Positions 18,872 to 35,676 of a stretch of DNA of 64,000 nt are shown here, piece after piece; positions within the stretch are counted from its first letter, which is position 1, and each line of letters opens with the position of its first letter. The DNA is taken from the NCBI GenBank assembly GCA_048772705.1, contig JBLWGC010000208.1:248001-312000 (forward strand), read 5' to 3'. This stretch comes from Leidyana gryllorum EB-2025a (Eukaryota; Protista; Apicomplexa). A model generated the notes under the pieces. The model saw only the letters and a list, made by a program, of their open reading frames with translations, did not search any database and was not told the DNA's origin. The position numbers and the translations under genes are program-made.

Positions 18872-19895
18872 TTAGCTTTCAATGTCCTCCAAGTCGACAT
18901 CGTCGTCGAATAAGGCCTCGTCTTTCCAGAACACTTGATCTTTGGCCGCAGAGCTCGACGGAGGCTCCTCGAGATTGCTTGTGGTTGTGCCAGCGGCACC
19001 TTCCAAGCCGCGAGCTCGGAGGAATATATCCTTCCCTGTAGGTCGTGAGTCTATGAGGTCTTCATCTTTCCATATGCCAGCAGTGATCATCTCAAACCGG
19101 AAAGCGTGTCTCCATTTCTGGAACTGTTCCTCTGTCACTCGATGATCCTCGGCCACCAGATCTTTATCTGCGAGACGGCCAGCGCTGCTGTGGCTAGAAA
19201 CGGAATCGTCATCGTCGTCTTCGTCGCTTCCATAATCATCACGGAGACCGCCCCCAGGGCCTGTACAGGGGCTCCCGCCGGTCTGGTTCTTGGCAACTGT
19301 GTCGAAGAGAGAGCGCAGGGGCTCGTTATTCGCTTGCAGCCATTCCTATATGCAAAAAGTGACCGGGGGCTCAGAGGGGATGCCCCTGCTGCTTACTGTT
19401 ATCCGGGAGTAAAGGTCGAAGAGCACCTCAAACCCCGCGTTAGACGAGAGAGTGTCTTCAATAATCGCCTTGATGGCATTTTCCCGTGCACCATCAATGT
19501 TTTTCTCTGTGGACAGCAGAAAGTATATCATCGACGAGGCATTATTGAATCGGAGAAACTGCACGGGCGTGGAGGAGTGAATGGATGGATACGTCTGTCT
19601 GTCTGTCCGTCCGTCAGTCCGTCGGTCAGTCCAGTGGTGATGTTTTGCAGTGATAGGGGTTTTGTAGCTTACTCGATGTTATGAATACCTCGACTGGCGC
19701 CTCAGCAGGGTATTCGGGTGGGACAGAGAGTCTGAGGCCAATGGCGACTTGATTTTCGGTAGAGTCCATTGGAAGGCCTGGGGAGGGCAGGAGGAATATG
19801 TTGACATCGGTCCCATTGACTTGAATATCGGTGTCTGTGAATATGGACTGGAGGGCTTCGACTTCGTCAGCCTGATGTTGAAGGAGGGACGTCAT
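18872..19895 (-). CDS. RWD-domain protein (RWDD1/Gir2/DFRP2, partner of DRG GTPases), spliced
   Basis: Motifs QADEVEALQSIF, PPEYPAEAP, SMIYFL, VTEEQFQKWRHAF, RPTGKDIF and an acidic DEALFDDD tail. Confidence 0.85.
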
Positions 19896-19959
19896 CCTGA
19901 GGGCTTATTGGGGGCAAAAATTTCCGGAATTGATAGTTTGGTGATCTACAGTGAAGATA

Positions 19960-21477
19960 ATGGCGAATGCAGGGCGAGTGATAATGGTCATCGCAGAATT
20001 CGTTCTGTGGATGGCAAGCATTGGCATCGGCGCTAGGCTTGGCGGGATGTGCATAGGTTTCATGGGAGGTCTGGGTGTCGGAATATTGGTGTTTGGCTTT
20101 CAGGAGCCGGTTGGTACGATCCCTTTCGACGTGCTCCAGATCCTGATGGCTGTGGTATGTGCTACGGCGGCTCTTGAGACGGCGGGCGGTCTTAACGTAT
20201 TAGTGGACTGGTGCCGGAAATTGTTGCAGAGGCACCCGAAATGGATTACACTTGTGGCTCCCTTGGTGACGTGGATAATGACAGTCGCTAGCGGCACGGG
20301 ATACGTCTTTCTGGCACTGATGCCTGTGGTGGCGGAGGTGTCGAGGACATCTGGCGTCCGGCCTTCCAAGCCTTTGGCGGTGTCAGTCTTAGCTTCAATG
20401 TATGGAGTGATCGCGTCGCCTATCTCTGCGGCTATTGTGTATATGGCTGAACTGTTTGAAGAGTTTGACCGTCCGGTATCGTACGCCGACTTGCTGATAA
20501 TTATGATACCTTCGACACTGATTGGATTGATAGTCACGTCCGTCTGTACAATGAAAATTGGCAGCGACACGGCCTGGGCCGCAAATGTAGCCACAGGCGA
20601 TAAGGAAGCCCCCATCGATTCGCCTCTGCTCAAATCGCATTCGGCGGTGTTGAATTCGCTGAGATCTCACTCCCTCAACATCGACGATAAAGTCCCCTAC
20701 CAGAGTAATGGAGGTATCGCTGACCTCGAAGGACAGCGAGCGATTGGCACCCCGACGACAGAGCCTCGGACGAGTTTGGCCCCCTCCCTTGGCGGAGAGG
20801 GGACCACTACCAGCGGGGAAGTGTTGGTCACTCACAATGATCGTCGCGCTGTGTACGCGGTGATCATCTTCTTCTTTTCGATTGTGGTGTCCATTGTGAT
20901 CTCTATTCTATCTGCGAGCATAGACCTGAAAGCGGGGGCAGCGGATGCGATTATTATCTCTCTGTTTGCCGGAGCTGCCGCCATTGTGTGGATTTCGGGC
21001 GCGGATGCGGCTCAGATACCGAGAACTAGTGTGTTTGCGAGTGGTATGACTGCGGCAATGTGTATTTTGGGAGTGGCGTGGATGGGTGGTACCTTTATGG
21101 GTGCTCATATGAAAGATATCAATGGGCTGACAGGTGACCTACTCACATCGCAACCTTGGGTTCTCATGGTGCTCGTCTGGTTGTTCGCCAGTCTACTCTT
21201 TGGACAGGCTGCCACCTGCCGGGCCATGTTGCCCCCGGCGATGGCACTTAACCTCGGCACCTATTACGCCCTCCTCTGTTTCGCCTGTTCCGCAACTCTG
21301 TGGCTGCTCTCGAGCGCCCCAGCAATCATCGCTGCCGCACAGATGGACACAACCGGATCCTTCAGACTGGGCAAATACCTCATCGACCACTCATGTGCCC
21401 TCCCCGGTCTGATTTTCTCCGCCACCACCATTGCCACCACCGCTGGGATCGGATACTTTGTCATTGGCACAGATTGA
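19960..21477 (+). CDS. Anaerobic C4-dicarboxylate transporter, DcuA/DcuB family (bacterial type, intronless)
   Basis: Motifs IGARLGGMCIGFMGGLGV, AALETAGGL, HPKWITLVAP, GTG...PVVAEVS...RPSKPL, ASPISAA, GMTAAMCILGVAWMGGTF, QAAT and QMDTTGSFRLGKYLIDH, with about 10-12 hydrophobic segments. Confidence 0.9.
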   Translation: MANAGRVIMVIAEFVLWMASIGIGARLGGMCIGFMGGLGVGILVFGFQEPVGTIPFDVLQILMAVVCATAALETAGGLNVLVDWCRKLLQRHPKWITLVAPLVTWIMTVASGTGYVFLALMPVVAEVSRTSGVRPSKPLAVSVLASMYGVIASPISAAIVYMAELFEEFDRPVSYADLLIIMIPSTLIGLIVTSVCTMKIGSDTAWAANVATGDKEAPIDSPLLKSHSAVLNSLRSHSLNIDDKVPYQSNGGIADLEGQRAIGTPTTEPRTSLAPSLGGEGTTTSGEVLVTHNDRRAVYAVIIFFFSIVVSIVISILSASIDLKAGAADAIIISLFAGAAAIVWISGADAAQIPRTSVFASGMTAAMCILGVAWMGGTFMGAHMKDINGLTGDLLTSQPWVLMVLVWLFASLLFGQAATCRAMLPPAMALNLGTYYALLCFACSATLWLLSSAPAIIAAAQMDTTGSFRLGKYLIDHSCALPGLIFSATTIATTAGIGYFVIGTD

Positions 21478-21509
21478 TCGATTGATCACTCCGTCTGGAG
21501 GAGAGAGAA

Positions 21510-21570
21510 ATCTGTCTATCTCTCTCTCTTTCTGTCTGTCTGTCTGTCCGTCCATCCACCCATCCAACCC
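21510..21570. repeat. Degenerate microsatellite tract (TC / TCTG / TCCA)
   Basis: Direct read: tctgtctatctctctctctttctgtctgtctgtctgtccgtccatccacccatcc. Confidence 0.75.
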
Positions 21571-23007
21571 CTTTCATCCCATAATATCGTCAGAGCCACG
21601 CTCTCCGCCCAGCACATCCCCCGCCCTTTCCCACCATCATATTCCTTCCGAGTCGCGTTGTTCGTGAACTATCGACTACAATAGAATCGACTTCGGACCA
21701 CTGACTGACTGATCAATTGTATTGGAACGTCTCATAGCATTCGAGAATGCAAATATTGCCACCACAATCCACCCCTCCGGTACTGTTAAGCCGTTTGCGC
21801 TACTTACCTGCACTACTAACTCAAACCCTCATCCGCCCTCACTCTTTACATATATATACTTCTTCACGTTCACCGCTTTTGATGGTGTAACACAGAGGTC
21901 CTCCTGTCTGACGTACGGCGACGAGTTTCCACGTACGCAAGAAATATACTTCTTCTGGAGGCTCACTGCCCCACCACGACGATCACTTTACGTCATCTGG
22001 ACCCTAAAACTCCGCATAAAATAACCAAACCTCGCTCCTGGGACAGTCCATCACCCAAATGCTTGGATTGTTCCAAACTTTGTAGATAAGTCTCATATGC
22101 GATTGCGATTGCGAGTGCACGAGCGGTGTAATACCCCGTCTCTTTGTGTCTATAAGAGTGTGTGTGTGTGCGCGCCCCAAATGTATGTGTGTAAGGTCCG
22201 TGCCCAGGGAGGTCATTGATACTGTCTTATACCAACATCGAACGCTTATTCAATGTCACAGGTCTCGGGCCACACCATACAATGCTATGCTCCTATACGC
22301 TTCACTCAGATGCACACACTGAGTATATTTACACCAGTTGCAGTGCTATATGCACAGAAAAAGAAATTCAGCTGGAGGAGACCTGTCCAATCAGGATGTG
22401 AACGAGGCCGATCGCACGTCTTGAAATCAGTTGGATGGTCCCCGGCTGTGTGTGTGTCCATACAGCGCGGGATGCTTTGCCTGGAATGCATATGGACCAC
22501 ACTTTGGGCTTCAAGGGCGACCGGACCATATTTTGGTCTTTTCATCTTTCATCTAACTACTGTGTCCTTAGCTCATCGGTAGTTTTTCCCGGCACCTGGA
22601 CTACAAGAGGCCCCGTGCTGATCAACTCGGAGACTCGATGTTCTAATTTTCGGTTTGACGAACGGAAGGAGTCTCCAGATTCATCAAAGAATCTGACATT
22701 ACCTCACAGTGAACCCGACGACATTTGCGCATTCTGCTCTCAGAGCCTTTCTTCTAATTTTCGGTGACTGGTCGAGCGAGCTCTCCCACAATCAGAGACC
22801 GACTGCCTATATTGGGATGATGAGTCGATTGAGTGTACCGCATTTGATGGTGGTATATCAGTCAGCCCATTGGACACTGCAATTAAAGGATGTTGTTGTC
22901 CCCTCAAGTTTTCGTTCTCGTAGGCGAACTTGCGTAAGCTCTCTTGATATACCCCAAGGACCGTGTATTGGTTCCTCTGGTACTCCGTATCCCACGCCCG
23001 AAGATCT

Positions 23008-23090
23008 GGTCGGTCGGTCGGTCGGTCGATCCGCGGGCTCGTGCCCCAAAAGGGGAGAATGATTGATTGATTGACTGACTGACTGGCTGG
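23008..23090. repeat. Tetranucleotide repeats (GGTC)n and (GATT/GACT/GGCT)n
   Basis: Direct read. Confidence 0.75.
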
Positions 23091-23383
23091 CCTTGACGAC
23101 TCAAGTAGCATCTCGGGTCACTCACTCACTGTCTATGAAGCGAAGGTTGGAATTCTGTTGATCGGGAGCACAAGTTTTATGAAGGATCGCTCGTCAAACG
23201 GCACTATCTCCAGCGTCAACCCATCAATTTTGATCTGCTTCATCCTTTGACTGTGCTGCTTAGCTGAGAAATAGTTCTGTGCGCGCGTGTGTCCTTCCAA
23301 CCCATTTCCGTTTCATTATCAGCTCATACCGTTGGCTGGCGGCCGGCTGGCTGGATCGATCGATCGATATGTTTCTGTGTCAC

Positions 23384-24133
23384 TTATTGCCCGTAGCAAT
23401 GATGGATGCACCCTGGAGGGGCGGGGGTTGGTTCAGAAGATTCACGTCGCAGTTTGCTGAGCAGCCCTTCCAACTCACTGGCCCTATCTATCAAGAATGA
23501 ACACTCGTTAAGTCCTAAAGTCTTAGGCTGACCGCGATGTCCGCAATCACTGGCTGGCTGAGAGGTCGCTTCGTCGCTGCCAAGTCGAAGGTCATTCACA
23601 CCAATGGTCATTCTTCCATCTTCGAGATCCGATGCGCCGACAAAGCATGGGGGTGTCCGGCCCATAAGAGGCCCGCTGCAGGTCGATCTGAGCATATAGT
23701 TGCAGCTAGTTGCGGTGGAAGAATTACTATCGTGAGGAAGAACACTCATTTCCACCAGCGGCGGTAAGTATCTTGTGGCACCAAAAACACTTGTGTCCAT
23801 TGGTGGTTCCTGGTGGTAGCCACCTCGGCAACATATTCTGGGTAGACACCTGGCGAGGCCTAAAATCCTTTGCACACTAAAGTCTTGGATTACTCGAATT
23901 GGGTCCTCGAACCGGTAACCTTTCTCCCCTTCCAAGCCTGAGCTGCCGCCTTGGGGTCCCGCACCCTCAGGTTGTTGTTGATCAGCCGCAGTCGGCGGCA
24001 TACAACCCCAGTGAAGGATTTCTTCCACTCTCATTCCCCCCGTGTTAGGGCACAGTGCCATCAAATGCGCCATAAATCTTCCGCCAGCTGCTGTGCTGTT
24101 GCGCCACCTCGACACTCGGACAACCGCCGACAT
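23384..24133 (-). CDS. Hypothetical protein (about 250 aa)
   Basis: Long ORF with no recognised domain. The start is uncertain. Confidence 0.4.
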   Translation of the reverse strand: MSAVVRVSRWRNSTAAGGRFMAHLMALCPNTGGMRVEEILHWGCMPPTAADQQQPEGAGPQGGSSGLEGEKGYRFEDPIRVIQDFSVQRILGLARCLPRICCRGGYHQEPPMDTSVFGATRYLPPLVEMSVLPHDSNSSTATSCNYMLRSTCSGPLMGRTPPCFVGASDLEDGRMTIGVNDLRLGSDEATSQPASDCGHRGQPKTLGLNECSFLIDRASELEGLLSKLRRESSEPTPAPPGCIHHCYGQ

Positions 24134-24221
24134 TGAGAGCAGCGTCAAGTCCGAACCGACTTTTTTGAGTTTTCGACTTCCCGCCCTTTCATACCTCTCT
24201 TATTTTCGGCCACATTTCATT

Positions 24222-25652
24222 CTAAAGTCTCGTGGCCTGATGTCGAGCGCTGATCAAAACGATTGGATTCGAATCCAACACCACCACCACTCCACTCTCC
24301 TCCACTTCGCAGTCGTCAGTACAACAACCATCTCTCAGCCAGTTTGAGACTTCTGCTTTGGAGGGCTGCGGTCTACGATCTGGTGCTCGCCCAGGAGCAC
24401 CCCTTGCGTTCAGGATGTCGAGTCTAAACGATCCCGCTGCTTCACGAGTGGAACTCACAAACGCCGCCCCCCAGTCTCTCATCACCACCTGCGCGGCCAC
24501 ATCGGGATTCCCTTCATGCCAGGTTCTCGGGAAGGCCAGGTACACTTTACCAATCTGACGTGGCTCGATGATGGAACCTGTCAGCAGCCAAAGCAAGTCC
24601 GCCACTTCAACGTTCCAAGGCGAATAGCAATCCCATTGAGTGGCCCACGTGGACTTCCTTTCCGTATTGAAGACCCGAACCATTGGGACGGAATAGCAGA
24701 AGCGGCCAGAGAAAGGTTCAGCATCCAACAGTACTGCTGTCTTGGAGATTGCATCGTACCAAACAATGTGTGCAGGCGGACGCTCCTCTGGAATCACTCG
24801 TACCTCCTCGGGCGTTTGCGACTCGGCAGCTGCAGAGACCGATTGCCATTCGATTCCCGTCTCCGAGTTGACGTCGGCAACGGAAACTCGTTCAATGGCC
24901 GTCTGCGGGTTGAGAGCTGCAAGTGTGACCCTTTCGATCACCGACTGCGGATTGGGAGCGACTGCCTCCCATTCAGTTGCCGTCTCCGAGTTGACAGCTA
25001 CAGCTGATACCCATTGCACAGCTGCTTCGAGCTGCGAGAGTCTCGCATTCACACCCGCCATCCCGTCCACAGTCGGCTCAACTCGGCCTGGCAAGCTGTT
25101 CCCCGCATCGGAGTCTGTGATCGCAAGCACACGAGCCGAAGCTTGGCCATCCTCCGGTAGCGAAGAGCTTCTATCACCTTCGAACCGATCAATACTATTT
25201 TCGCTCAACTGTGCATCACCTCCAGACTGACTTTCACCTGTTGAGCGCCCCGAACCGGTTTTCGGGGGAGTTCTGATCACCGCAATAACTTCGTCTCGTG
25301 CCGATCCTTTGGGAGTACGATAGAATAGGACTTGTGGGGAGCGTGGTGAGAATTTATGGTCATTCATGTGGGAGGATAGGCCGTCTATCACCAAAGACCG
25401 ATAGGCTCTGTGCATGGTCGGGTAGTGCATATCGAGGGTCGCGACCATATCTTGGACCGTGGCGTCATCAAGTATCGGAAGTGCTTCTGTTGGGCCACAA
25501 TCCCGTGTTATGTGGATGCTGGGGAATTCCTCCGTACGCGGCCACCATGAGAGACACCACGGAGCCGAGGCCACGTGACCGAAGAAAGTCAAAGTTTGTG
25601 GGTGGCCTCTTCGTCGAGACTTTGGTGTGGAGGGGTATAGAATACTTCTCAT
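24222..25652 (-). CDS. Hypothetical protein (476 aa) with a short internal repeat
   Basis: Uninterrupted ORF containing the repeats VNSETATEW/VNSETGIEW and NPQSVIERV/NPQTAIERV. Confidence 0.6.
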   Translation of the reverse strand: MRSILYPSTPKSRRRGHPQTLTFFGHVASAPWCLSWWPRTEEFPSIHITRDCGPTEALPILDDATVQDMVATLDMHYPTMHRAYRSLVIDGLSSHMNDHKFSPRSPQVLFYRTPKGSARDEVIAVIRTPPKTGSGRSTGESQSGGDAQLSENSIDRFEGDRSSSLPEDGQASARVLAITDSDAGNSLPGRVEPTVDGMAGVNARLSQLEAAVQWVSAVAVNSETATEWEAVAPNPQSVIERVTLAALNPQTAIERVSVADVNSETGIEWQSVSAAAESQTPEEVRVIPEERPPAHIVWYDAISKTAVLLDAEPFSGRFCYSVPMVRVFNTERKSTWATQWDCYSPWNVEVADLLWLLTGSIIEPRQIGKVYLAFPRTWHEGNPDVAAQVVMRDWGAAFVSSTREAAGSFRLDILNARGAPGRAPDRRPQPSKAEVSNWLRDGCCTDDCEVEESGVVVVLDSNPIVLISARHQATRL

Positions 25653-25988
25653 CTAACATGGACTCAGCAGCGCCCAAAATGTGTGGTCAACAGCAATGGC
25701 AATAGTACTGAGAAAATCTTGTGAGAAACTCAATGCCACCTGTAAGTGATCCAAATTTCGGCTAATTGCGTTCATGGAAACAGTGCATCAAATTCGCATG
25801 TCTCCCGGCCGCGCCCTCGAGCACACACACTCGTTCGTCTGTTGGTTCACTGAATACTGAGTCCACACGAGTGTGAAAGCAGTGCGATTAGTACCTTCCT
25901 CTTCTATGGAACATTCCAAATCAGCTGTTGATCGGCAACAGTAGCACGAAATTTGGACAAATTACGAACGGTTCAGTGCCCTGCCCAT

Positions 25989-28094
25989 ATGGACAATTTG
26001 ATTGACCAGCCATTGCTCGCCGCAACAGAGACGCAGGGATGGCTGAAGGTTCAAGAGAGCGTCCCCTTCTCTTTTGAGTATGTGCGAGACCAGACGAAGA
26101 TCTCGTGTGAAGGGCAGCGCGTGGTGGCCATCGAGGGCGAGCCAATTTTCTCTTTCGACATCCGGCACGGGTTCCGGTGGGTCGGGGATGAGAGTGTCGA
26201 CGCCTCCATCCTCGAGGACATCCAGAGGCTGCAGTGGCGAAAACATTTAGTCACTGGAGGCGTATTACTCCGGCTGGAGGGCGCCGCTGGGGCTCGGATC
26301 AGCTGCCGGCGGCTGGGTGAGATGAGCAGATACCTCAAAGAGCAACATGAAATGGTCGTGTCACTCGAGATGTTGGCCGATGGTTACGATTTCAGCGAGG
26401 CAGTGGTCTTTGTCCTTCCCGTGGAGCTACGGGCTCGCGGCTCCGACCCGCTAGAGATTATAGCCGCGATCAAGGCGGACGCTGGACTGCACATCGAAAC
26501 CGAACACAGTGATATGATGGTCCGGGCACCGATTATTTCGGAAGGGGGAGCGATCACTTTGGAGAGCGGTCACTTAATCCGGAACAGCAGCCGCATTTCA
26601 GCCTCGAGGGTTCACATTCGGGTGCCAAAGTTTGTCAACGAGGCATCGGTGACACGACACGTCAAAGTGGAGGCAGTGGGCATAGATGGGTTTTCAGCAG
26701 CAGACTCTTCCTCCTCTTCGTACCTTCGAATTGAGGCTCTGGAAGTACAAAACTATTCCTTGTTGAAGTGCACAGGCGACATGTGGATTGGCAGCAGTTG
26801 GACTTCCACTGACTTCTCGGCGGGAGAGGGACTTTCACGGGCTCGTTTGATCAACAGCGGAGCCATAGATTGTGGTCAAAATCTGGTTTTGGGGGTGGGA
26901 GAGATACAGCAGGTACAGCGATTGGATACAGCAAAGTGGAGGGGTTCCTGGGGTAGAGTTTCGGGGATAAGCGTGGATCACATGGCGCTCGCCGATCTGC
27001 CAGTGGTATCTTCAGTCTGCCCGATAGGAGCAGATTTGAGGAAGGCGCTCCAACTTGAGACCTTCGTGCGGTTCCATTCGTCGGTCAGCAACCCGATGAA
27101 ATGGTATCGAATCAGAGATGAGGTCCACCAACTCAAAGGCGATTTCGCCAAGCTGGTTCGGTTGCAGCGTGTGCCGCTCCAGCTCGAAATCAGTGAACGG
27201 AACGTCACGCGGAGAGAGTTTAACCAGAAGCTCGAGAGGCGAGAGATAACGGCAGCGCCGCAGTACTATGACATCGTGGAGCCGATGCTCGAAAACCTCA
27301 GCATCAGTGATGGGACTGGGGAGGACGAGATTGGACTGATAGCGAGGACAAAGACCAATGAGTATCTCTGGGCACCCATGAGACTCTGTAGATTTGTACC
27401 GGCCCGCTACATGCGGTGCTGTGGGAAGAGGAAGTGTTATCGCCTTAAGCCCTATGAGGAACTTGATGATTGCGACAGAGAACAGGTGGAGGAAATATTG
27501 TACGAAGAAAACTATGAGTGGCGGGACTACTACCACTTCGCCCCGGCGATACGGTCCTTAGCAGCGGTCGAAGATTACTGTCATCCCCAACCGTCCATCA
27601 GTGTTAAGGGTGCCATCTTTGACGTCTTTAAGGCGAGGAGACTGGAGTGCATTGGGGTCCCCGTACATGTTCACATTAAGACGGGATGGAAAAAGTCGAG
27701 TTGTCGCCATTATCCTCGGAGGCCGGAGGAGGTGGTCGAGAGCATTTCTGAAGTATGGTGGTACCTTTTTCTCCTCCTTTGCTGGCTGAACAGCTTGAGG
27801 GGGTTGAGTGTGTGGCACTTCCTCTTCAGGTTCTTTTTTGATCCGCTCATCACCGTGCTGCTGGCCACCGTCCTCGAGAACCTCGAATACTTGCCGTATC
27901 CATTGCTGCTGGCCGTCGTCCGCGGCACCCTCAAAGAATTCCCGTATCCCTCCCGAAGGCCCAACTTTGAGAACGCACAGAGTACCGAGTACACAATTCT
28001 GCTGCCGAAAGACCTTTTGCCGACGAAAGCTCCGCTCAGCATCGAACTCGAGGACCACTTGCCGCGATGGCACGACCACGTGTGGTACTATTGA
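25989..28094 (+). CDS. Intronless membrane protein with filamentous-haemagglutinin-like repeats (paralogue A, about 700 aa)
   Basis: Motifs GGAITLESGHLIRNSSRISASRVHI, LEVQNYSLLKCTGDMWIG and LINSGAIDCGQNLVL, plus a hydrophobic C-terminal region. Colinear with the gene at 28142-31489. Confidence 0.7.
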   Translation: MDNLIDQPLLAATETQGWLKVQESVPFSFEYVRDQTKISCEGQRVVAIEGEPIFSFDIRHGFRWVGDESVDASILEDIQRLQWRKHLVTGGVLLRLEGAAGARISCRRLGEMSRYLKEQHEMVVSLEMLADGYDFSEAVVFVLPVELRARGSDPLEIIAAIKADAGLHIETEHSDMMVRAPIISEGGAITLESGHLIRNSSRISASRVHIRVPKFVNEASVTRHVKVEAVGIDGFSAADSSSSSYLRIEALEVQNYSLLKCTGDMWIGSSWTSTDFSAGEGLSRARLINSGAIDCGQNLVLGVGEIQQVQRLDTAKWRGSWGRVSGISVDHMALADLPVVSSVCPIGADLRKALQLETFVRFHSSVSNPMKWYRIRDEVHQLKGDFAKLVRLQRVPLQLEISERNVTRREFNQKLERREITAAPQYYDIVEPMLENLSISDGTGEDEIGLIARTKTNEYLWAPMRLCRFVPARYMRCCGKRKCYRLKPYEELDDCDREQVEEILYEENYEWRDYYHFAPAIRSLAAVEDYCHPQPSISVKGAIFDVFKARRLECIGVPVHVHIKTGWKKSSCRHYPRRPEEVVESISEVWWYLFLLLCWLNSLRGLSVWHFLFRFFFDPLITVLLATVLENLEYLPYPLLLAVVRGTLKEFPYPSRRPNFENAQSTEYTILLPKDLLPTKAPLSIELEDHLPRWHDHVWYY

Positions 28095-28141
28095 GAGATT
28101 ATCATTGTGTGTCTGTTGCTTCTTCTTCAAAACCAATTTCA

Positions 28142-31100
28142 TTATTTAGCGAGACCTGGACATAAAACACCCCAAAACCGCTCATGCGCATCGGTCAATT
28201 GCTGTTTGTGCGTCCAGAGACAGATCAGAGCCGTTTCTGAGCAATGCGTTGGCTCGCGGCACATCTTGAAGGAGATGGTCGCTGGCGAGTCTCTGAGTCC
28301 CAGAGACGACGCCCCTTGCGTGCACACAGCCACCAATCGCTTGAGACCCGCAAAGCACACTGAACCCGCGACAGCGTATCGGAGATATATTGTGAAGAAG
28401 GCAGAGAGAATCGTCACTCTATCGGCTGGCCGATACTGTTGGAATTGATTATTGAAGGCCGTCTCGTTCTCCCACGAGAAACTCTGGAACGGCTTCTGAA
28501 TCAGAGACACCGCTTCGGACATTTTAAATTCCGCAGTCGGGAAGCCGAATACCATTGCCGACAGCCGCTCGACCACGTGGTGTTGCATATTCGTTAGTAT
28601 CTCTCGCAGAGCCGACAGTTCATACTTGTCCAAACACGAGGGATCGAACAGGCCGACTGACGGGGGATGTCTGGCATTCGGGCCTTTCCAACACAACCTG
28701 TGACACTGTTTCAATTGTGATCCCAAAAGTTGCCTCGATAGCGGCTTTGGGAGCAAATCTCGGAGCGGGAAGTACACCTTTCCGCCTTCGACGATATGAG
28801 TCGATGTCCGGCTAGTGACTCCGAGCTCTCCTCCGTTCGGTGTGGCGCCACTCACCAACGATGCCCTCAACGGCGCTTCCAAGCGACACAAAGACATCTC
28901 TCGAGCCGAGCTGCCACGGAGCAGTGCATAAAAGAGAGAGACGTAGAATAAGAGTCCGACCAAACCGCTCAGAAGGCCCCAAGTGGCGGTTCCAGCCAGC
29001 AGGACTAAAACAGCCCCAACTACTCCGGCCCAGAACGGTCGCATAGCTGTGGGGGCAAAGTGTGAGTCGTCTCGATGAGACTCGTTTGTACTTTGCTGCT
29101 GCGGTCTGAGGTTATGGGTGCAGCCGGAGTAGAGTTTCTCAGAACAACATCGACGCAGGGGGACCCCCACTGACGAGATGTCCACCTCTTTCATTCCCGC
29201 TATGGCTATCATCTCGTGACGCCCGTGCATGAAACCCGCTTGATGGATGAGAGGGGTATATAGGTACAGATCACCGCCAGCGAATATAGTTGGCGTCTCG
29301 CTTTGCTGCAGACTCCTCCAAAGAACCTCTCGTTGAGCTTCTGTGGCTACCTCGAAATGGGGTACCTGATACCGATACTCGTGGACTGAGTACTGTGCAT
29401 ACCAAGGCGCCACTAACTGCCTCTCCAGATGCCACCACACCTCAGCTTTTGGTCGCAGCCAACGACACAGCCCCGGACATTTGTCCGCTTTGTGGAGATT
29501 ACTGAGGACTGCTGGGACCCAGAAGGTTGTTCCTGTCGAAGTCTGGCACACATAACCGACAGTGTCACGGGGCCACATGAGTAACGCAGCGACCATCTTC
29601 TCCTCTTCCCGGGCTTTACGGTATGTTGTGTACTCTTCCAGGTATTGGTGGTACTTTACATCCGAGGCGAGGCAAACGTAGGAGCGGCCGTGACTCGGGT
29701 CGCCATTGATGGTTATCCACTCCACTGCTCCGACGGCTGGGCTTTGGCACACCTCCAACTCCTCGAGACGGTAGCCTCTGCGAGGATCGACGATGGACTT
29801 TGGGAACGAGTACATAAGACCGTCCGTTTGTTGACGGAGAGATGCCGGGACCATTGTCTCCGCTTCGCCCCGCCGCAGGTCCCTCCAGGCATCGCGCCAC
29901 AAGTTGTGGTCAAAGTGAAAGTCACTCTGAAGCCTCTCATAACAATTGGTCACTTTTTGTCCATAAAGCGCAATGTCGTGGTCGCATCCAATGTAACCCG
30001 AGTTGTAGATATGAGAGCGAATCGGTGGCGCCATTCTCTCAGCGGGGGGCATTGATACTGCCGAAGGCGGGGATCCCTCGCGGGAAGGAGACGCCTCGGG
30101 AGGCGGCGGGGGCGGCACAGGATTTCCAATTGTCAGCGATCCTTGAGAGTATATCGTAGCTTCTCTGTTGATGATGAAATCTGCCACAATCTCGATGTCG
30201 ACTGCCTTTGTGTCGCACTCGTCTTTGATAAACGCGAGGATCTCCGGGCGGGGCTCTGAGCGTTCAGTTTGCTGTTGCGCCCACGTCTGCGGATTCACCG
30301 CCGAGTTCTCAACAGTGGGCGCCCGGAAGGCTATTCGTGTTGCCCGAATACTCGAGTGATTCTTAATCCCACAGGAACTCGCGATCTTAAGTGAAGGCGT
30401 AGATATCGGTGCCTTTATGACCACAGCAGACTTCTCAGACGCCAGAGTAAACTCGCAAGGCGTATCTATCGGCTGTTCCAGGACAACATCCTGATTCGTC
30501 TTGGCAACCAGACAAACCCGCAGGCCAAAGGTCAGTGGAGGGGGATTGGGGGTCTCGAAAGTATTGAAGTGATCGGAGAGGACGTGAAGCGTCGTTAAGC
30601 GATTAGAAGCGCGATGGTAAAGGAGTTTGAGGACAGTCTGCTGGAGCTGATGAAGAGGCAGTGACAACTTGGGCTTGGCCTCCAGAATCAAGTGGTGGCC
30701 GTCGGGCAATGTTGTCCATCGGACAGACGCCCAGGACTGGTAGAAATGGTCCCGTTTGACATTGTCGGAGTCGAGGAAGTATAACGCAGTGGGGCTCACA
30801 AACGAAGCAGTGAACAGCTCGCTGTACAGATCGCTATACACAGAGAAGCTATTATGAGCACCGACGAAACACTGCGCGATAGTCGCGAGGGAGAGCACAT
30901 CAACTCGAGTGGCTTTCCGCGCCGTCAGAATCACATGAGTCCGCTTTACTCCTTCTTCATCTTCTGCGGGCTCAATACAGATCGACTCGAAAGGGTTTGG
31001 GTGCCGCATACAAGTCAGGATGGTCGTCGGTAACTCAAAACGGAGACCATTTCCCCATATGATGCCGTCTGCCTCCACAGACACTCGACCCGTCACTTCT

Positions 31101-31489
31101 TTGGGTTTCGCAGCAGCAACAAGTGACGTAACCTTTGCGATCTCCGCCAGCTCCAACTGTCGCGTCCGAGGGTGAGCTCGGAGTAGCAGGTCAAAAGAAC
31201 TCAAGTCCCCCTTAAACTCCCACTCTGCGGAATTGTACCGCTTAGTGATCAACTTGAATGAGACATCTATGTTCTCCACCCATTCGGCGGCATCGCTCTC
31301 AGTCGTCGACACCTCTCTCGCCGTTATCTCCCCAGGGGTACAGTCCGTTGACTGTTTGATTGTGTCTGCTCCAGGCAGATGTTCATCGCTCTGCAGATCT
31401 TCATCGCTCTGAGTGACTTGATGGCCGCTTAGCCATGACTTACCGCGAGTGCTGAACCTATGTGTCTTCCACATCTCGTTGTCGATCAT
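28142..31489 (-). CDS. Intronless membrane protein with filamentous-haemagglutinin/CdiA-like repeats (paralogue B, about 1115 aa)
   Basis: Motifs IKNHSSIRATRIAF, FIINREATIYSQGSLTIG, IYNSGYIGCDHDIALYGQKVTN and PTIFAGGDLYL, plus a TM hairpin FWAGVVGAVLVLLAG...LLFYVSLFYALL. Confidence 0.75.
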   Translation of the reverse strand: MIDNEMWKTHRFSTRGKSWLSGHQVTQSDEDLQSDEHLPGADTIKQSTDCTPGEITAREVSTTESDAAEWVENIDVSFKLITKRYNSAEWEFKGDLSSFDLLLRAHPRTRQLELAEIAKVTSLVAAAKPKEVTGRVSVEADGIIWGNGLRFELPTTILTCMRHPNPFESICIEPAEDEEGVKRTHVILTARKATRVDVLSLATIAQCFVGAHNSFSVYSDLYSELFTASFVSPTALYFLDSDNVKRDHFYQSWASVRWTTLPDGHHLILEAKPKLSLPLHQLQQTVLKLLYHRASNRLTTLHVLSDHFNTFETPNPPPLTFGLRVCLVAKTNQDVVLEQPIDTPCEFTLASEKSAVVIKAPISTPSLKIASSCGIKNHSSIRATRIAFRAPTVENSAVNPQTWAQQQTERSEPRPEILAFIKDECDTKAVDIEIVADFIINREATIYSQGSLTIGNPVPPPPPPEASPSREGSPPSAVSMPPAERMAPPIRSHIYNSGYIGCDHDIALYGQKVTNCYERLQSDFHFDHNLWRDAWRDLRRGEAETMVPASLRQQTDGLMYSFPKSIVDPRRGYRLEELEVCQSPAVGAVEWITINGDPSHGRSYVCLASDVKYHQYLEEYTTYRKAREEEKMVAALLMWPRDTVGYVCQTSTGTTFWVPAVLSNLHKADKCPGLCRWLRPKAEVWWHLERQLVAPWYAQYSVHEYRYQVPHFEVATEAQREVLWRSLQQSETPTIFAGGDLYLYTPLIHQAGFMHGRHEMIAIAGMKEVDISSVGVPLRRCCSEKLYSGCTHNLRPQQQSTNESHRDDSHFAPTAMRPFWAGVVGAVLVLLAGTATWGLLSGLVGLLFYVSLFYALLRGSSAREMSLCRLEAPLRASLVSGATPNGGELGVTSRTSTHIVEGGKVYFPLRDLLPKPLSRQLLGSQLKQCHRLCWKGPNARHPPSVGLFDPSCLDKYELSALREILTNMQHHVVERLSAMVFGFPTAEFKMSEAVSLIQKPFQSFSWENETAFNNQFQQYRPADRVTILSAFFTIYLRYAVAGSVCFAGLKRLVAVCTQGASSLGLRDSPATISFKMCREPTHCSETALICLWTHKQQLTDAHERFWGVLCPGLAK

Positions 31490-31915
31490 CACTTCAGGGG
31501 TCAATAGTTGCGGAAAATAAAACTTGATGACGAGATTGGCCGTACTTTAAAAACTAACACTCTTAAAGCCTTCAAGCCCAAAGGCGCGCCAAACTGTCTC
31601 CAATCCCAAGATGGCAACGTAAGAACACTGATAGCCTCAACTGTGGCTGCAACTGATATATCGACGCCGAGATCCCAATAGTTGCCGTGCACACCTCCCC
31701 CCCGGCATGACATATCACACACACACACCCCCTCCCCGAACCCACGGACTCATTCTCTGTGACCCATCCACAGTGGCCTAATCGAAAGTCTCACTACACA
31801 CGTCCACCTGAGACTACAGCAACATAAATCGAATGACGGGATTGAAGTGACTTGATCGCGTTGAACAGTGGTTCTTACAATGTGTGTTGTATCTATCCCC
31901 TCGATCTGGAATTTG

Positions 31916-33499
31916 TCAGAAGAAAATGGCCACAGACAGAGACCAAATTAAGGGAGGAGTTGTGCTATCTATCGGTTTGGGTGGAAACAGTGGCGAGACA
32001 TTGGACGACTTCTTCCCACGAGTCGCCGAGCGCCTTGCAGCGATTCGCAAACTTAGGCGTCTGACTTTCTGACGCAAGCGCTCGCGGCGCCCCATCGAAC
32101 AGTCTCCTTGTGAAACGGGAAGGAGGAGAGCTTCAGCGATTGCTCGAGTGGCCGTCTCACTCGATGGAATGAGTGTGATCTCCCCCAAGGGCCCATCGAG
32201 TAGAGATCCTCCCAACCCGCAACTGAGAAGATTGATCATGTCTTTGGCGCCTTCAATGAGAACGAATTCAAGAGACCTCTCCTGGCGATAGTAACGGTAC
32301 ATTCCTTTGCCAACGATGAAAAGGAGATGGCACCCCAATACATAGGGGAAGGCTGCCGATGAGATGACAGACGCCGCCAGACACACTTCAACGCCCCCGG
32401 GAAACAGAGATAAGGTGAATTCGAGGGCAGTGACAGCTGTATGAACTGTGGCTGCCTGAATCATCCCACGCTTGAAACTCTTACTTACACTACTCCAATC
32501 GAATGTGGCGTCTCGGGTGAGAACCAGTTGCTGCTGATTCGCGCCGGGCCTCAACAAAGGACCGTTGGAGACTGATGGACTGTCGTGCACATTTCCGAGT
32601 GTTGGAGAGCGACTGTATGATATGGCCAGCGCCGCTTCCACCAAAGGGCACCCGTTCAGATCGTGGTGACCTCCACCGCTGGAAGGTATCTCTTGGCCCC
32701 GGTCTCCGCTGCCTACACTCGAGTTCTTGGAACTCGGCATTCTGACCCTCTCGAACCACTTTTGTGGCGTCGTTCGCGACGTCACAGTGTCGTCTGTCAG
32801 GACGCAGAGCTCCGACTTTTCGGATGGGCAGTGAGTAACTGTGTGGCCGGGCGGTCTGGCATCCACCGAACTGACGCGACCACCAGCGAGGAGTGACCTG
32901 TGTCGACATTGATCGACGGCACTCTTGAGCCTTCCAGCGCCACTCGATCGGCACTTTCGTCGCCTGTGGCCCCTCGAGTTCGATATACTCCCCGCCGACT
33001 CGTCGTCAAATGAGAGTACTATAGTTTCTAAGCAGAGGGAGAGTTGGATCCTCGGGCTTTCTAACGCCTTTATCCGGAAACGCCGAGTGGGAGGAGAGAG
33101 CATTGCCAGCGGCGTTTCACCGTCGCTCGGAGAGGAGATGCATTGGGCTCGAAGTGCAACTGGAGAGGTGGGCCGAAGTATTGGTCTTCTGTCCTGGTAG
33201 GCTAAGAGGGCATCGTTGTCAATGTGTGAGTTGGAGGGGGTATGGGATGGCGTGGGTTCGTTGAAACAGTGAATAATAACGGAGAGACGGTCGTCGAACA
33301 GACGGTCAGCGTAAGCGAGTGATCCCTGGGGTGGCCAGGGAGTGTGGATTCGCACAGAAGTAGACTTGGTGGGTGTTCTGGTATCGTCGGTCGCATAGAG
33401 TTTGGGTTTGGAATGAGACAGCTCAGCCGCCGCCTGTAATATGGGGTGGCGGGAGTTGTGCGGCCGTGATGAATGGATTGATGATCGAGTAGGCACCAT
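31916..33499 (-). CDS. Hypothetical protein (527 aa) with a disordered N-terminus and hydrophobic C-terminal helices
   Basis: Long uninterrupted ORF with hydrophobic segments such as VCLAASVISSAAFPYVLGCHLLFIVG. Confidence 0.55.
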   Translation of the reverse strand: MVPTRSSIHSSRPHNSRHPILQAAAELSHSKPKLYATDDTRTPTKSTSVRIHTPWPPQGSLAYADRLFDDRLSVIIHCFNEPTPSHTPSNSHIDNDALLAYQDRRPILRPTSPVALRAQCISSPSDGETPLAMLSPPTRRFRIKALESPRIQLSLCLETIVLSFDDESAGSISNSRGHRRRKCRSSGAGRLKSAVDQCRHRSLLAGGRVSSVDARPPGHTVTHCPSEKSELCVLTDDTVTSRTTPQKWFERVRMPSSKNSSVGSGDRGQEIPSSGGGHHDLNGCPLVEAALAISYSRSPTLGNVHDSPSVSNGPLLRPGANQQQLVLTRDATFDWSSVSKSFKRGMIQAATVHTAVTALEFTLSLFPGGVEVCLAASVISSAAFPYVLGCHLLFIVGKGMYRYYRQERSLEFVLIEGAKDMINLLSCGLGGSLLDGPLGEITLIPSSETATRAIAEALLLPVSQGDCSMGRRERLRQKVRRLSLRIAARRSATRGKKSSNVSPLFPPKPIDSTTPPLIWSLSVAIFF

Positions 33500-33620
33500 T
33501 GTTGAAAAAAGTGTATTTCACGCGATCTGTGGAGTGGATCTACCGGAGTTGGGTACCAATTCCTCTTCCTTTTGGGGCACACTGGTGTTGATTAGGGGGA
33601 AAGAATTGTATAAACTACAT

Positions 33621-34307
33621 TCAGCACAGGCTACTGAGAAGGCGGGACTTGGCTTGGACAAACTCGACTTCAGACAGATATCCAGATTGGTAAAGATTCA
33701 CGACCTTCTCGAGTTGTGTGGCAATGTCACCCCGCAGCGATGTACCAGTCGCAGCAGACCAGGCAGTGGGGTCATTCTCATCCCCAATGAAGGATCTGCG
33801 CGGTGTATTGCGATCATAGCAGAAATCGGCAGCGTGTGGTCGTTCGGCAGCGCCAGAGACAGGTTGCGGAGTGGACGCTACTGTGGCTGGTGTATGCTGT
33901 GTAGTCGGTGAGGTGGAGTTGAGTGCTGGGCTTCTTGGCAGATGTGTGTGACTGTTATTAGCGCTCTTGTTATTAGGTAAGCGATAATTGCGGAGTTGAT
34001 CGCAGTTAGCGCACGAAGGCGAGCAGGGCACGATGAAATCGACATTCCATTCACTCGAAATAGTGATCGAGGGCGAAGACGCCTCTGCACTTGTAGCTGG
34101 TAAACTTAGGACTCGTTTGTCAAGGAGCTTTTGGCTCAACTCGGATTGGCGGACAAAGAATCGCAGTCGGCAAATTGAACTGACGCCTTTGTCTCTATGG
34201 GAGGTCTCCAGAAAAGCCCGGATAAGCTGCCCAATAGTGACTTCACGGTCCAGCTCCAAGGACCATACTCTATTATTAATATCAGGATCTTTGACTAGAA
34301 AGCGCAT
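33621..34307 (-). CDS. Protein with a ubiquitin-like N-terminus and a C-terminal SHOCT domain
   Basis: MRFLVKD...SLELDREVTIGQL...LRFFVRQSEL fits a beta-grasp pattern. DIATQLEKVVNLYQSGYLSEVEFVQAKSRLL fits the SHOCT pattern. Confidence 0.65.
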   Translation of the reverse strand: MRFLVKDPDINNRVWSLELDREVTIGQLIRAFLETSHRDKGVSSICRLRFFVRQSELSQKLLDKRVLSLPATSAEASSPSITISSEWNVDFIVPCSPSCANCDQLRNYRLPNNKSANNSHTHLPRSPALNSTSPTTQHTPATVASTPQPVSGAAERPHAADFCYDRNTPRRSFIGDENDPTAWSAATGTSLRGDIATQLEKVVNLYQSGYLSEVEFVQAKSRLLSSLC

Positions 34308-34403
34308 ACTGTTGTTCGACTGGCAGTGAAATTGACACCTCCTGCTTCCATAATGCACACACCAACCCTCAAAAAGACACCCCAATAAAACTCTCAGCCA
34401 CCC

Positions 34404-35676
34404 ATGAAGGTCAACATACACAAGCGAAACCAACGCTTCCTGGGGCAGGTCGAAGTCGACCCAGAAGCCACAGTCGAGGAGTTCAAGTTGGCCTTCTACC
34501 ACCAGTGTACGTGAAATACCTCTACCGTTCCCACATCGAGTTTTCTGCAGTCCACTACTATCCAGAACGTCAACGTTTCACCACCAAAGACCGTAAGTCG
34601 TCTCAACACACACGTTTCGCACGAGAAATCACACTTTAGCACGAGGTCCGGTCGTGTGCGATGGGCGATTGAAGGACTATGCTATAGAGGAAGGGTCCGT
34701 TCTGTACTTCAAGGATCTCGGAGTGCAAATCAGTTGGCGACTGGTCTTCGTCCTCGAGTATCTCGGACCCCTTCTGTTATTCCCCATATTCTATGGACTC
34801 CCCCAACTAGTTTACAACCAGCCGGTGACGCACAACCTCACTCAAAAGTAGGTGTATCACACCGCAGCGTTGATCTTGCTGCTCACTCACTGGACACTGT
34901 GCAGACTGGCCTTCTCAATGGTCATGGGACACTTCCTGAAGCGCGAGTTTGAAACCCTGTTCATCCACCGCTTTTCAAACGCCACTATGCCGATCATTCG
35001 TCTTCCTGTGAACTGTTTCCACTACTGGTGAGTGTATTGTGTGTTGTGTCGGCGGCACTGGCATCCAGGATCCTTTGTGGGCTTGCGATTGGATACTTTG
35101 TATTCCACCCCAAGTATATGGCACCTATTGATTCTCCACTGGTCAACTTTGCTCTGCTCGGCCTATTCGTGGTAAGGCTGGACGACTGCTCTCTTTGGTC
35201 TGTCAAGTCGCTTTCAGCTCTTTGAAGTCCTCAACTTGCAAACGCACGTAGTTCTCCGAGAATTGCGCCCACGCGGCACTCGCCAGCGCGGGATCCCAAG
35301 AGTAAGGAACTCTATACACATCGCTCTCTCCCTTTTCCCAGTCGGGGGCGCTCTTATACCGACACCTTTCACTCTTCCGCCCCCTCCCCTTTCCAGTATC
35401 AACATTTTGTCACAGGGCTGGGGTTTCGATCTGGTATCATGTGCAAACTATTTCTGGGAGTCCCTTGTGTGGTTGACCTTTGCTATTATGGCGGGAACTT
35501 TGACAGCCTGGGTCTTCTTGGTTGTGGCTGTTGGACAGATGACTCAATGGGCTCTCAAGAAACACGGCTCTTATCGCAAAACGTTCGCGGACTATCCCAA
35601 GTAAGTTTCGAGCAGACCCTCTGTGTACTGCAACTCTGACAGGTCACGAAAAGCCATATTCCCGTATATACTGTAA
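34404..35676 (+). CDS. TECR: Very-long-chain enoyl-CoA reductase (TECR/Tsc13), multi-exon
   Basis: Motifs YPERQRF, FKDLGVQISWRLVFVLEYLGP, HFLKREFETLFIHRFSNATMP, FDLVSCANYFWE, QWALKKH and RKAIFPY. Confidence 0.93.

Follow-up and report, generated by a model that had tools for sequence, protein, structure and literature searches.

A DcuA-type transporter gene of probable bacterial origin in the nuclear genome of a gregarine-like apicomplexan

A DcuA-type gene in a gregarine-like genome

The stretch of DNA analysed here, a window of 64,000 nucleotides (C208:248001-312000, whose contig measures 312 kb or more), contains on its forward strand a gene that we call DcuW and that codes for a protein of the Dcu transporter family. 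We consider it probable, though well short of certain, that this is a real nuclear gene of a gregarine-like apicomplexan, DcuA-type in kind, which descends from a dcuA gene received long ago from bacteria and later duplicated, and whose product is a predicted exchanger of C4-dicarboxylates or aspartate for succinate. The bacterial, DcuA-type origin by transfer appears well supported by the trees described below, and a single old transfer into gregarines with later duplication is our best reading of them, with moderate support.

19960..21477, plus strand: coding sequence of the DcuA-type transporter DcuW, 505 amino acids plus stop, without intron (open reading frame, Pfam PF03605, NCBIfam NF006927 and TIGR00770, AlphaFold model)

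The open reading frame spans 19951-21477 (+). In alignments its start codon (ATG, 19960) lines up with those of the paralogues; a TGA at 21475-21477 closes the frame. DcuW matches the Pfam family PF03605 (DcuA_DcuB) with an E-value of 2.3e-97 and 326.7 bits against a cut-off of 27, in two stretches, and it exceeds the cut-offs of the NCBIfam models NF006927 (373.1 bits; cut-off 369) and TIGR00770 (345.5 bits; cut-off 331.35). A six-frame search of the genome recovered both halves of the PF03605 profile in order (positions 1-190 and about 221-366) within one stop-free frame of 510 amino acids. The 505 codons hold neither a frameshift nor an internal stop, and an open frame of this length with such a family score cannot arise by chance. 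An earlier note, made from the sequence of the window, had described a full-length, intronless gene of the Dcu family, and that description stands. Judged by its sequence and phylogeny, DcuW is a member of the Dcu family (TC 2.A.13) and of its DcuA branch.

The host assembly comprises 15.5 Mb in 237 contigs. GC content is even along the window (48-58%), which also codes for a phosphoglycerate kinase (PGK), an M16 peptidase and an ATG4-type peptidase. The PGK is 74% identical to that of Blabericola migrator, 72% to that of Gregarina niphandrodes and 71% to that of Gregarina sp. Pseudo, with Vitrella and Chromera next, and its nearest solved relative is the Plasmodium enzyme. By this affinity the host is taken to be a gregarine-like apicomplexan other than G. 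niphandrodes, for which 72% is too low, and its gregarine affinity in turn points to life in a gut. The exact sequences of DcuW, two of its paralogues and the PGK were not found in a collection of 15 billion proteins.

Immediately upstream of DcuW lies a divergent gene of eukaryotic structure.

19896..19959, no strand: spacer of 64 nt between the divergent start codons, read directly from the sequence and presumably a shared bidirectional promoter with the 5' untranslated regions
18872..19895, minus strand: divergent RWD-domain gene with three or more exons (the first from 19895, a middle one to 19397, the last at 19345-18872)

The RWD gene changes frame and carries in-frame stops, so that it is unreadable without splicing and requires at least two introns. 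The note had put the Dcu gene about 64 nt from an intron-containing RWD gene and had taken this closeness to count against simple contamination; the spacer is exactly 64 nt long, and the argument is now joined by third-position composition, by the paralogues and by homologues linked to eukaryotic genes.

That an assembler joined the Dcu frame of a gut bacterium to protist DNA, as contaminant or chimera, is an explanation that we regard as extremely improbable. It could appeal to the overwhelmingly bacterial make-up of the Dcu family, to the lack of an intron in DcuW and to the fact that the continuity of the junctions is that of the assembly itself. However, the gene starts 64 nt from the intron-bearing RWD gene on a contig of more than 300 kb with apicomplexan-type genes, and at the level of the assembly it is physically linked to undoubted eukaryotic genes (RWD, PGK, ATG4-type and M16). 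Its composition equals that of the host: the GC content at third codon positions (GC3) is 0.61, against 0.53-0.65 in host genes. The correlation of relative synonymous codon usage does not discriminate as a test of foreignness (0.47-0.77 for host genes, 0.50-0.74 for Dcu genes, 0.39-0.62 for bacterial genes), and the composition argument uses GC3 only. The highest identity to any bacterial protein is only about 40%, three more paralogues lie on other large contigs, and the long central loop described below is common to all eukaryotic copies and missing from Enterobacterales DcuA. In addition, independent assemblies place homologues next to eukaryotic genes, with P0130 between a large WD40 gene and PRP3, and P0291 adjoining one that codes for an alveolin IMCp domain. 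Because of the tight linkage to the RWD gene, the host-like GC3, the bacterial identity of at most about 40%, the three further Dcu contigs and the independent homologue contigs, DcuW is not contamination.

Relatives and origin of the gene

The genome search found four Dcu genes with intact frames, on contigs C205, C230, C208 (DcuW, in the window) and C51. C230 exceeds 1.2 Mb and also holds a malate dehydrogenase gene. DcuW is 33-35% identical to its own paralogues and is the most divergent of the three well-conserved copies; the fourth, on C51, is highly degenerate (Pfam score 63.5 bits, about 19% identity to DcuW). Two observations concern the surroundings of these paralogues. At about 204039-206235 of C51, a gene for an MscL mechanosensitive channel (L007:786-1436, +; Pfam E 5.6e-29) ends 31 nt upstream of the co-oriented Dcu gene (L007:1468-2982, +), so that two genes for bacterial-type membrane proteins stand back to back in a eukaryotic genome. 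On C205, a match to class I/II aminotransferases (143658-144371) lies about 7 kb upstream of the Dcu paralogue, which is probably a coincidence.

An exhaustive HMMER search over 1.84 billion representatives returned 1263 matches, the best of which to DcuW was a 522-amino-acid protein from the transcriptome of Gregarina sp. Poly1 (EukProt EP01054; 38% identity). A profile search yielded three more eukaryotic candidates, namely a transcript of Protomagalhaensia sp. Gyna, P0288 and P0291, and below them came hundreds of Enterobacterales DcuA proteins of 433 amino acids. P0288 derives from RNA sequencing of locust midgut and fat body (SRR5171257 and SRR5171258; PMC7643970). All matches that could be traced to eukaryotes come from gregarine transcriptomes, from RNA sequencing of insect tissue or from contigs with eukaryotic neighbours, and since the Gregarina sp. 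Poly1 and Protomagalhaensia proteins were recovered from RNA data, those homologues are expressed. Among the named proteins of the best 120-150 rows, most of which are nameless, none came from Plasmodium, Toxoplasma or Cryptosporidium, and no taxon-aimed search was made.

The nearest ESM Atlas clusters are all 100% bacterial, and the closest bacterial protein, at about 40% identity, is an Enterobacterales DcuA. Bacterial relatives show the aspA-dcuA arrangement, including the classical fxsA-aspA-dcuA-cutA/dsbD locus; P0001, P0004, P0290, P0123 and P0181 each adjoin a Lyase_1 gene. The nearest relatives outside the gregarines thus sit in bacterial aspA-dcuA operons, in agreement with the description of the family in the note as essentially prokaryotic.

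Two long Dcu proteins considered as further eukaryotic members, P0123 and P0181, were set aside on account of their bacterial-style arrangement beside Lyase_1 genes. A Dcu homologue of 518 amino acids occurs in GCA_037975565.1 (JBBCBH010012557.1, L025:4839-9054), where the gene stands between a Lyase_1 gene broken into two frames, behind which it lies, and a transposase of insertion-sequence type, which comes after it. The same 27.8-kb contig has a frame bearing an animal haem-peroxidase domain; the assembly may be eukaryotic, with this Dcu gene either inserted from a bacterium or a contaminant.

In a quick maximum-likelihood tree of 91 rows, DcuW grouped with the C205 and C230 paralogues, P0291 and P0130, with a Shimodaira-Hasegawa approximate likelihood-ratio test (SH-aLRT) value of 95. 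A more careful tree of 38 rows, under LG+C20+F+G4 with posterior mean site frequencies (PMSF), placed all eight eukaryotic rows in a single clade (ultrafast bootstrap 76, SH-aLRT 95.8). Within it, a subclade of cockroach and locust gregarines (100/100) was separated from {DcuW, P0130, (P0291, (C205, C230))}. The eukaryotic clade lay within the DcuA clade (100/99), beside the Enterobacterales and distant from DcuB; the neighbours there are an insect endosymbiont and then the DcuA proteins of Leclercia, Erwinia and Pantoea, and the cluster also includes Enterobacter and Klebsiella. Since the eukaryotic copies are nested in the bacterial DcuA clade, these trees are best read as showing a gene transferred from bacteria. 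An Enterobacterales-like donor is a reasonable guess.

The homologues in other gregarines and on two more eukaryotic contigs suggest that the transfer is old and that the gene has since been inherited within gregarines. The note had proposed horizontal transfer from gut bacteria to a gut-dwelling parasite. The bacterial source holds, given the nesting in the DcuA clade; a single recent uptake does not, in view of four paralogues, a bacterial identity of at most about 40% and homologues in other gregarines. The pattern of vertical descent that the note had named as a possible objection, orthologues widespread in alveolates, was found within gregarines and was not shown for other alveolates.

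A separate acquisition at the level of the species, in which DcuW was taken up from a gammaproteobacterium of the gut in an event of its own, unconnected with the other gregarine Dcu genes, seems to us distinctly improbable. DcuW is slightly more similar to an Enterobacterales DcuA (40%) than to its own paralogues (33-35%), one quick tree placed it apart from the remaining eukaryotic copies, and an approximately unbiased (AU) test did not reject the tree that joins it to Enterobacterales DcuA (p 0.30). Nevertheless, both the best maximum-likelihood tree and the 91-row tree join DcuW to the eukaryotic copies (SH-aLRT 95.8 and 95), and DcuW has their expanded loop. An identity of 40% and a host-like composition would make any transfer ancient rather than recent, and the unstable placement of DcuW is explained by its long branch.

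Under the reading of one old transfer, the gregarine lineage would long ago have received dcuA from a bacterium, in all likelihood an Enterobacterales-like gammaproteobacterium. The gene would then have lost its aspA partner, adopted the base composition of the host, gained a long disordered loop and been duplicated. Gut protists such as Blastocystis, Entamoeba and Trichomonas have acquired transporter genes and genes of anaerobic metabolism of bacterial origin. The history proposed for DcuW would follow the same pattern, with the difference that in this host Dcu grew into a family of four members.

The known proteins closest to DcuW show what has been kept and what has changed. With the DcuA of E. 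coli and other Enterobacterales it shares the family and subfamily clade, about 40% identity over the whole core, the two-half architecture, the first motif block and an elevator-type fold, the last as predicted. In contrast to them, DcuW is a eukaryotic nuclear gene without an aspA partner, so that the operon linkage typical of DcuA is missing; its product has 505 rather than 433 amino acids, a loop of three times the length for which disorder is predicted, and an altered second motif block. The proteins of Gregarina sp. Poly1 and Protomagalhaensia sp. Gyna are the best-scoring relatives of DcuW and its paralogues and share the expanded loop and the eukaryotic clade, but at 34-38% identity, in a subclade of their own (100/100) and with 2-5 departures from conserved positions rather than 14, they are not orthologues. 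E. coli DcuB, which exchanges malate or fumarate for succinate, belongs to the same Pfam family and presumably has the same fold and antiport principle, whereas the DcuB group (P0108 and relatives) forms a distant clade with 28-30% identity to DcuW.

Predicted fold, altered motifs and likely function

AlphaFold, given an alignment of 72 sequences, modelled DcuW with a mean predicted local distance difference test (pLDDT) score of 86.2 and a predicted template modelling score of 0.84, and the model is confident outside the central loop. The closest solved folds in a Foldseek search were DASS/INDY, NaS1, Pho90, TRAP-QM, ArsB and AbgT (template modelling (TM) scores 0.4-0.56), all of them elevator proteins of the ion-transporter superfamily. 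DcuW is thus predicted to be a polytopic, all-helical protein of this superfamily. Several of them are dicarboxylate carriers. The DASS/INDY proteins (VcINDY, LaINDY and NaCT) and the other elevator proteins of this set (Foldseek probability 1.0, TM 0.4-0.56), which carry di- and tricarboxylates, belong to a different family, with 11-14% identity and no detectable sequence similarity to DcuW. A profile search of the Protein Data Bank with DcuW gave no match, and the Dcu family is without a solved structure.

20569..20841, plus strand: expanded central hydrophilic loop, residues about 204-294, which splits the Pfam match in two (loop-length alignment, pLDDT)

The central loop has 93 amino acids in DcuW; its median length over 64 bacterial rows is 31 (range 17-81), and it measures 83-167 amino acids in 8/8 eukaryotic homologues. 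pLDDT falls below 50 at residues 221-228 and 236-290, and the loop is predicted to be disordered. The note had called it extended and of low complexity; the extension is plain, while the loop, in which Ser, Thr, Gly and Ala abound, is not strictly of low complexity. That all eukaryotic members have an expanded loop fits shared ancestry, with the caveat that eukaryotic proteins often grow loops. Among bacteria, Serratia entomophila (GCA_946226865.1, L023:6001-7539) has a DcuA of 512 instead of 433 amino acids in a canonical fxsA-aspA-dcuA-cutA-dsbD locus, so that expansion of the loop or of the length also occurs in an insect-associated bacterium.

21301..21375, plus strand: altered C-terminal conserved motifs, residues about 448-472 (LPTYPT changed to LSSAPA; Phe 468 in D-x-TG-(S/T)-T), from alignments

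Departures were scored at 59 alignment columns with a conservation of 80% or more among the 64 bacterial rows. DcuW departs at 14 of the 59, the C205 paralogue at 9/59, the C230 paralogue at 6/59 and the proteins of the cockroach and locust gregarines at 2-5/59 (2 in Gregarina sp. Poly1). Thus DcuW keeps 45/59 of these columns, and the first block, SPISAA, is unchanged. The changes in the motifs are S415G in SQAAT (codon about 21202-21204), P451S in LPTYPT and T468F in D-x-TG-T-T-R-x-GK. Together with the long branch of DcuW, these altered motifs suggest relaxed constraint or a shift in specificity. With the second motif block altered (LSSAPA, S415G, T468F), the substrate preference of DcuW may differ from that of its paralogues.

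It is unlikely, in our estimate, that this divergence goes as far as a neofunctionalised or decaying gene, that is, a DcuW with another substrate, a sensor-like role or one near loss beside canonical copies on C205 and C230. The count of departures, the highest among the copies compared (14/59 against 9 and 6 in the paralogues and 2 in Gregarina sp. Poly1, with S415G, P451S and T468F among them), would agree with it, as would a branch about three times longer, and the C51 copy shows that strong degeneration can happen (63.5 bits, about 19% identity). Yet the frame of 505 codons is free of frameshifts and stops, 45 of the 59 conserved columns and the SPISAA block are kept, and the model of the core fold is confident. 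An intact frame with 45 positions retained makes it improbable that DcuW is a dead gene.

Proteins of the DcuA type take up external L-aspartate in exchange for internal succinate or fumarate, working alongside aspartase (PMC10634366). Eugregarines have reduced electron transport, an anaerobe-like metabolism and remodelled mitochondria (PMC8051059). The note had suggested looking in the genome for partner enzymes of a Dcu pathway. Aspartase was not found in the host genome: its only full Lyase_1 gene, on a separate contig, codes for a class II fumarase (652.8 bits with TIGR00979; 427 bits with the aspA model, cut-off 681). A check for co-transfer of an aspA-dcuA operon thus turned up no aspA. 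Fumarate reductase is present as a soluble, flavocytochrome-c-type enzyme (317 bits, cut-off 285; contig C194, 53242-54636). The genome further codes for one malate dehydrogenase of the lactate dehydrogenase-like type, a transaminase of the aspartate/aromatic type and an SDHA-like gene. It has two loci for acetate/succinate channels of the SatP family (Gpr1_Fun34_YaaH), at 129711-130184 and 213041-213658 of C194 (L031, L032), the second of which is broken by stops, whether by introns or by decay; the DcuC family has no match in the host genome.

From these pieces, the likely function of DcuW is the exchange of a C4-dicarboxylate or aspartate for succinate across a membrane. DcuW would work as a secondary exchanger of the elevator type that takes in external C4-dicarboxylate or L-aspartate and lets out internal succinate. 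A reductive branch encoded by the genome would supply this succinate: oxaloacetate, made by the aspartate-type transaminase or by carboxylation of phosphoenolpyruvate, passes through malate dehydrogenase and class II fumarase to the soluble fumarate reductase, and the Dcu exchanger would couple its exit to the entry of aspartate or another C4 acid. Such a coupled exit would match the reduced electron transport and anaerobe-like metabolism of eugregarines (PMC8051059).

In the alignment DcuW and the bacterial proteins start only a few residues apart, DcuW has no N-terminal extension or presequence, and we therefore take the plasma membrane as the default location. A quite unlikely alternative is that DcuW resides in the inner membrane of a reduced mitochondrion and moves malate, fumarate or succinate between organelle and cytosol, with no part in uptake from the host gut or excretion into it. 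The remodelled mitochondria and reduced electron transport of eugregarines (PMC8051059) would provide a setting for it, four paralogues could serve separate membranes, and an SDHA-like gene is still there, but DcuW has no presequence and the fumarate reductase is of the soluble type.

Several findings weigh against a canonical, plasma-membrane exchanger derived from one old transfer. On the side of origin, the monophyly of the eukaryotic copies is moderately supported, with an AU p of 0.30 for DcuW joined to Enterobacterales DcuA; no branch in the tree is longer than that of DcuW (2.17 versus 0.63-0.80 for the paralogues); and the bacterial sister group, in which there are long-branch insect endosymbionts, is weakly resolved. 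On the side of function, the 14/59 departures include probable substrate-site motifs, which makes canonical activity of DcuW uncertain, and the host genome has no aspartase, so that the bacterial DcuA-AspA pathway cannot run as such. Channels of the SatP family could also export succinate or acetate. The substrate, transport direction and membrane location of DcuW are all predictions, and its expression and the continuity of the assembly are judged from sequence context.

Literature searches on Dcu in apicomplexans, gregarines and eukaryotes found no report of a eukaryotic gene of the Dcu family, and dicarboxylate transporters go unmentioned in the study of gregarine metabolism cited above (PMC8051059). 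No other large branch of the Apicomplexa is as little known as the gregarines, whose anaerobe-like metabolism has until now been rebuilt mostly from enzymes, not transporters. A Dcu family that occurs in several gregarines and four-fold here offers a testable candidate for the exit of succinate and the entry of aspartate or C4 acids. It is also a clean case of transfer from bacterium to eukaryote, with linkage, host-like composition, paralogue expansion and an added loop of eukaryotic style, and it supplies natural variants of conserved Dcu motifs that would be useful for structure-function work on the family.

More tentatively, as a possibility that we would not yet bet on, a single dcuA gene may have been captured early in eugregarines from an Enterobacterales-like bacterium of the insect or invertebrate gut, spread through the group, expanded to four copies and become the main route by which succinate leaves and aspartate or C4 acids enter, with DcuW turning to a new specificity. 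If so, an antiporter of bacterial fumarate respiration would be a core, lineage-defining part of gregarine energy metabolism.

Neighbouring sequence in the window

The exons of the RWD gene were inspected singly and not as a joined model. Its start codon is the ATG at 19895-19893 (-), and exon 1 matches the Pfam RWD domain with an E-value of 5.9e-9. Donor-like GTAAGC sites occur at 19672 and 19396. The intron at 19396-19346 is 51 nt long (GTAAGC...TAG) and phase-consistent, and a further intron lies roughly within 19559-19688, its junction placed approximately from the sequence.

Downstream of the Dcu gene, in the part of the window from 21500 to 34500, large open reading frames at 24222-25652, 25953-28094, 28142-31504 and 31916-33499 have no Pfam match. 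Similar short, tetranucleotide-like runs of ctgt, ccgt and ccat repeats occur at 19585-19635, in the region of the first RWD intron, and at 21505-21575, just past the Dcu stop codon; runs of this type look like common non-coding filler in the host genome.

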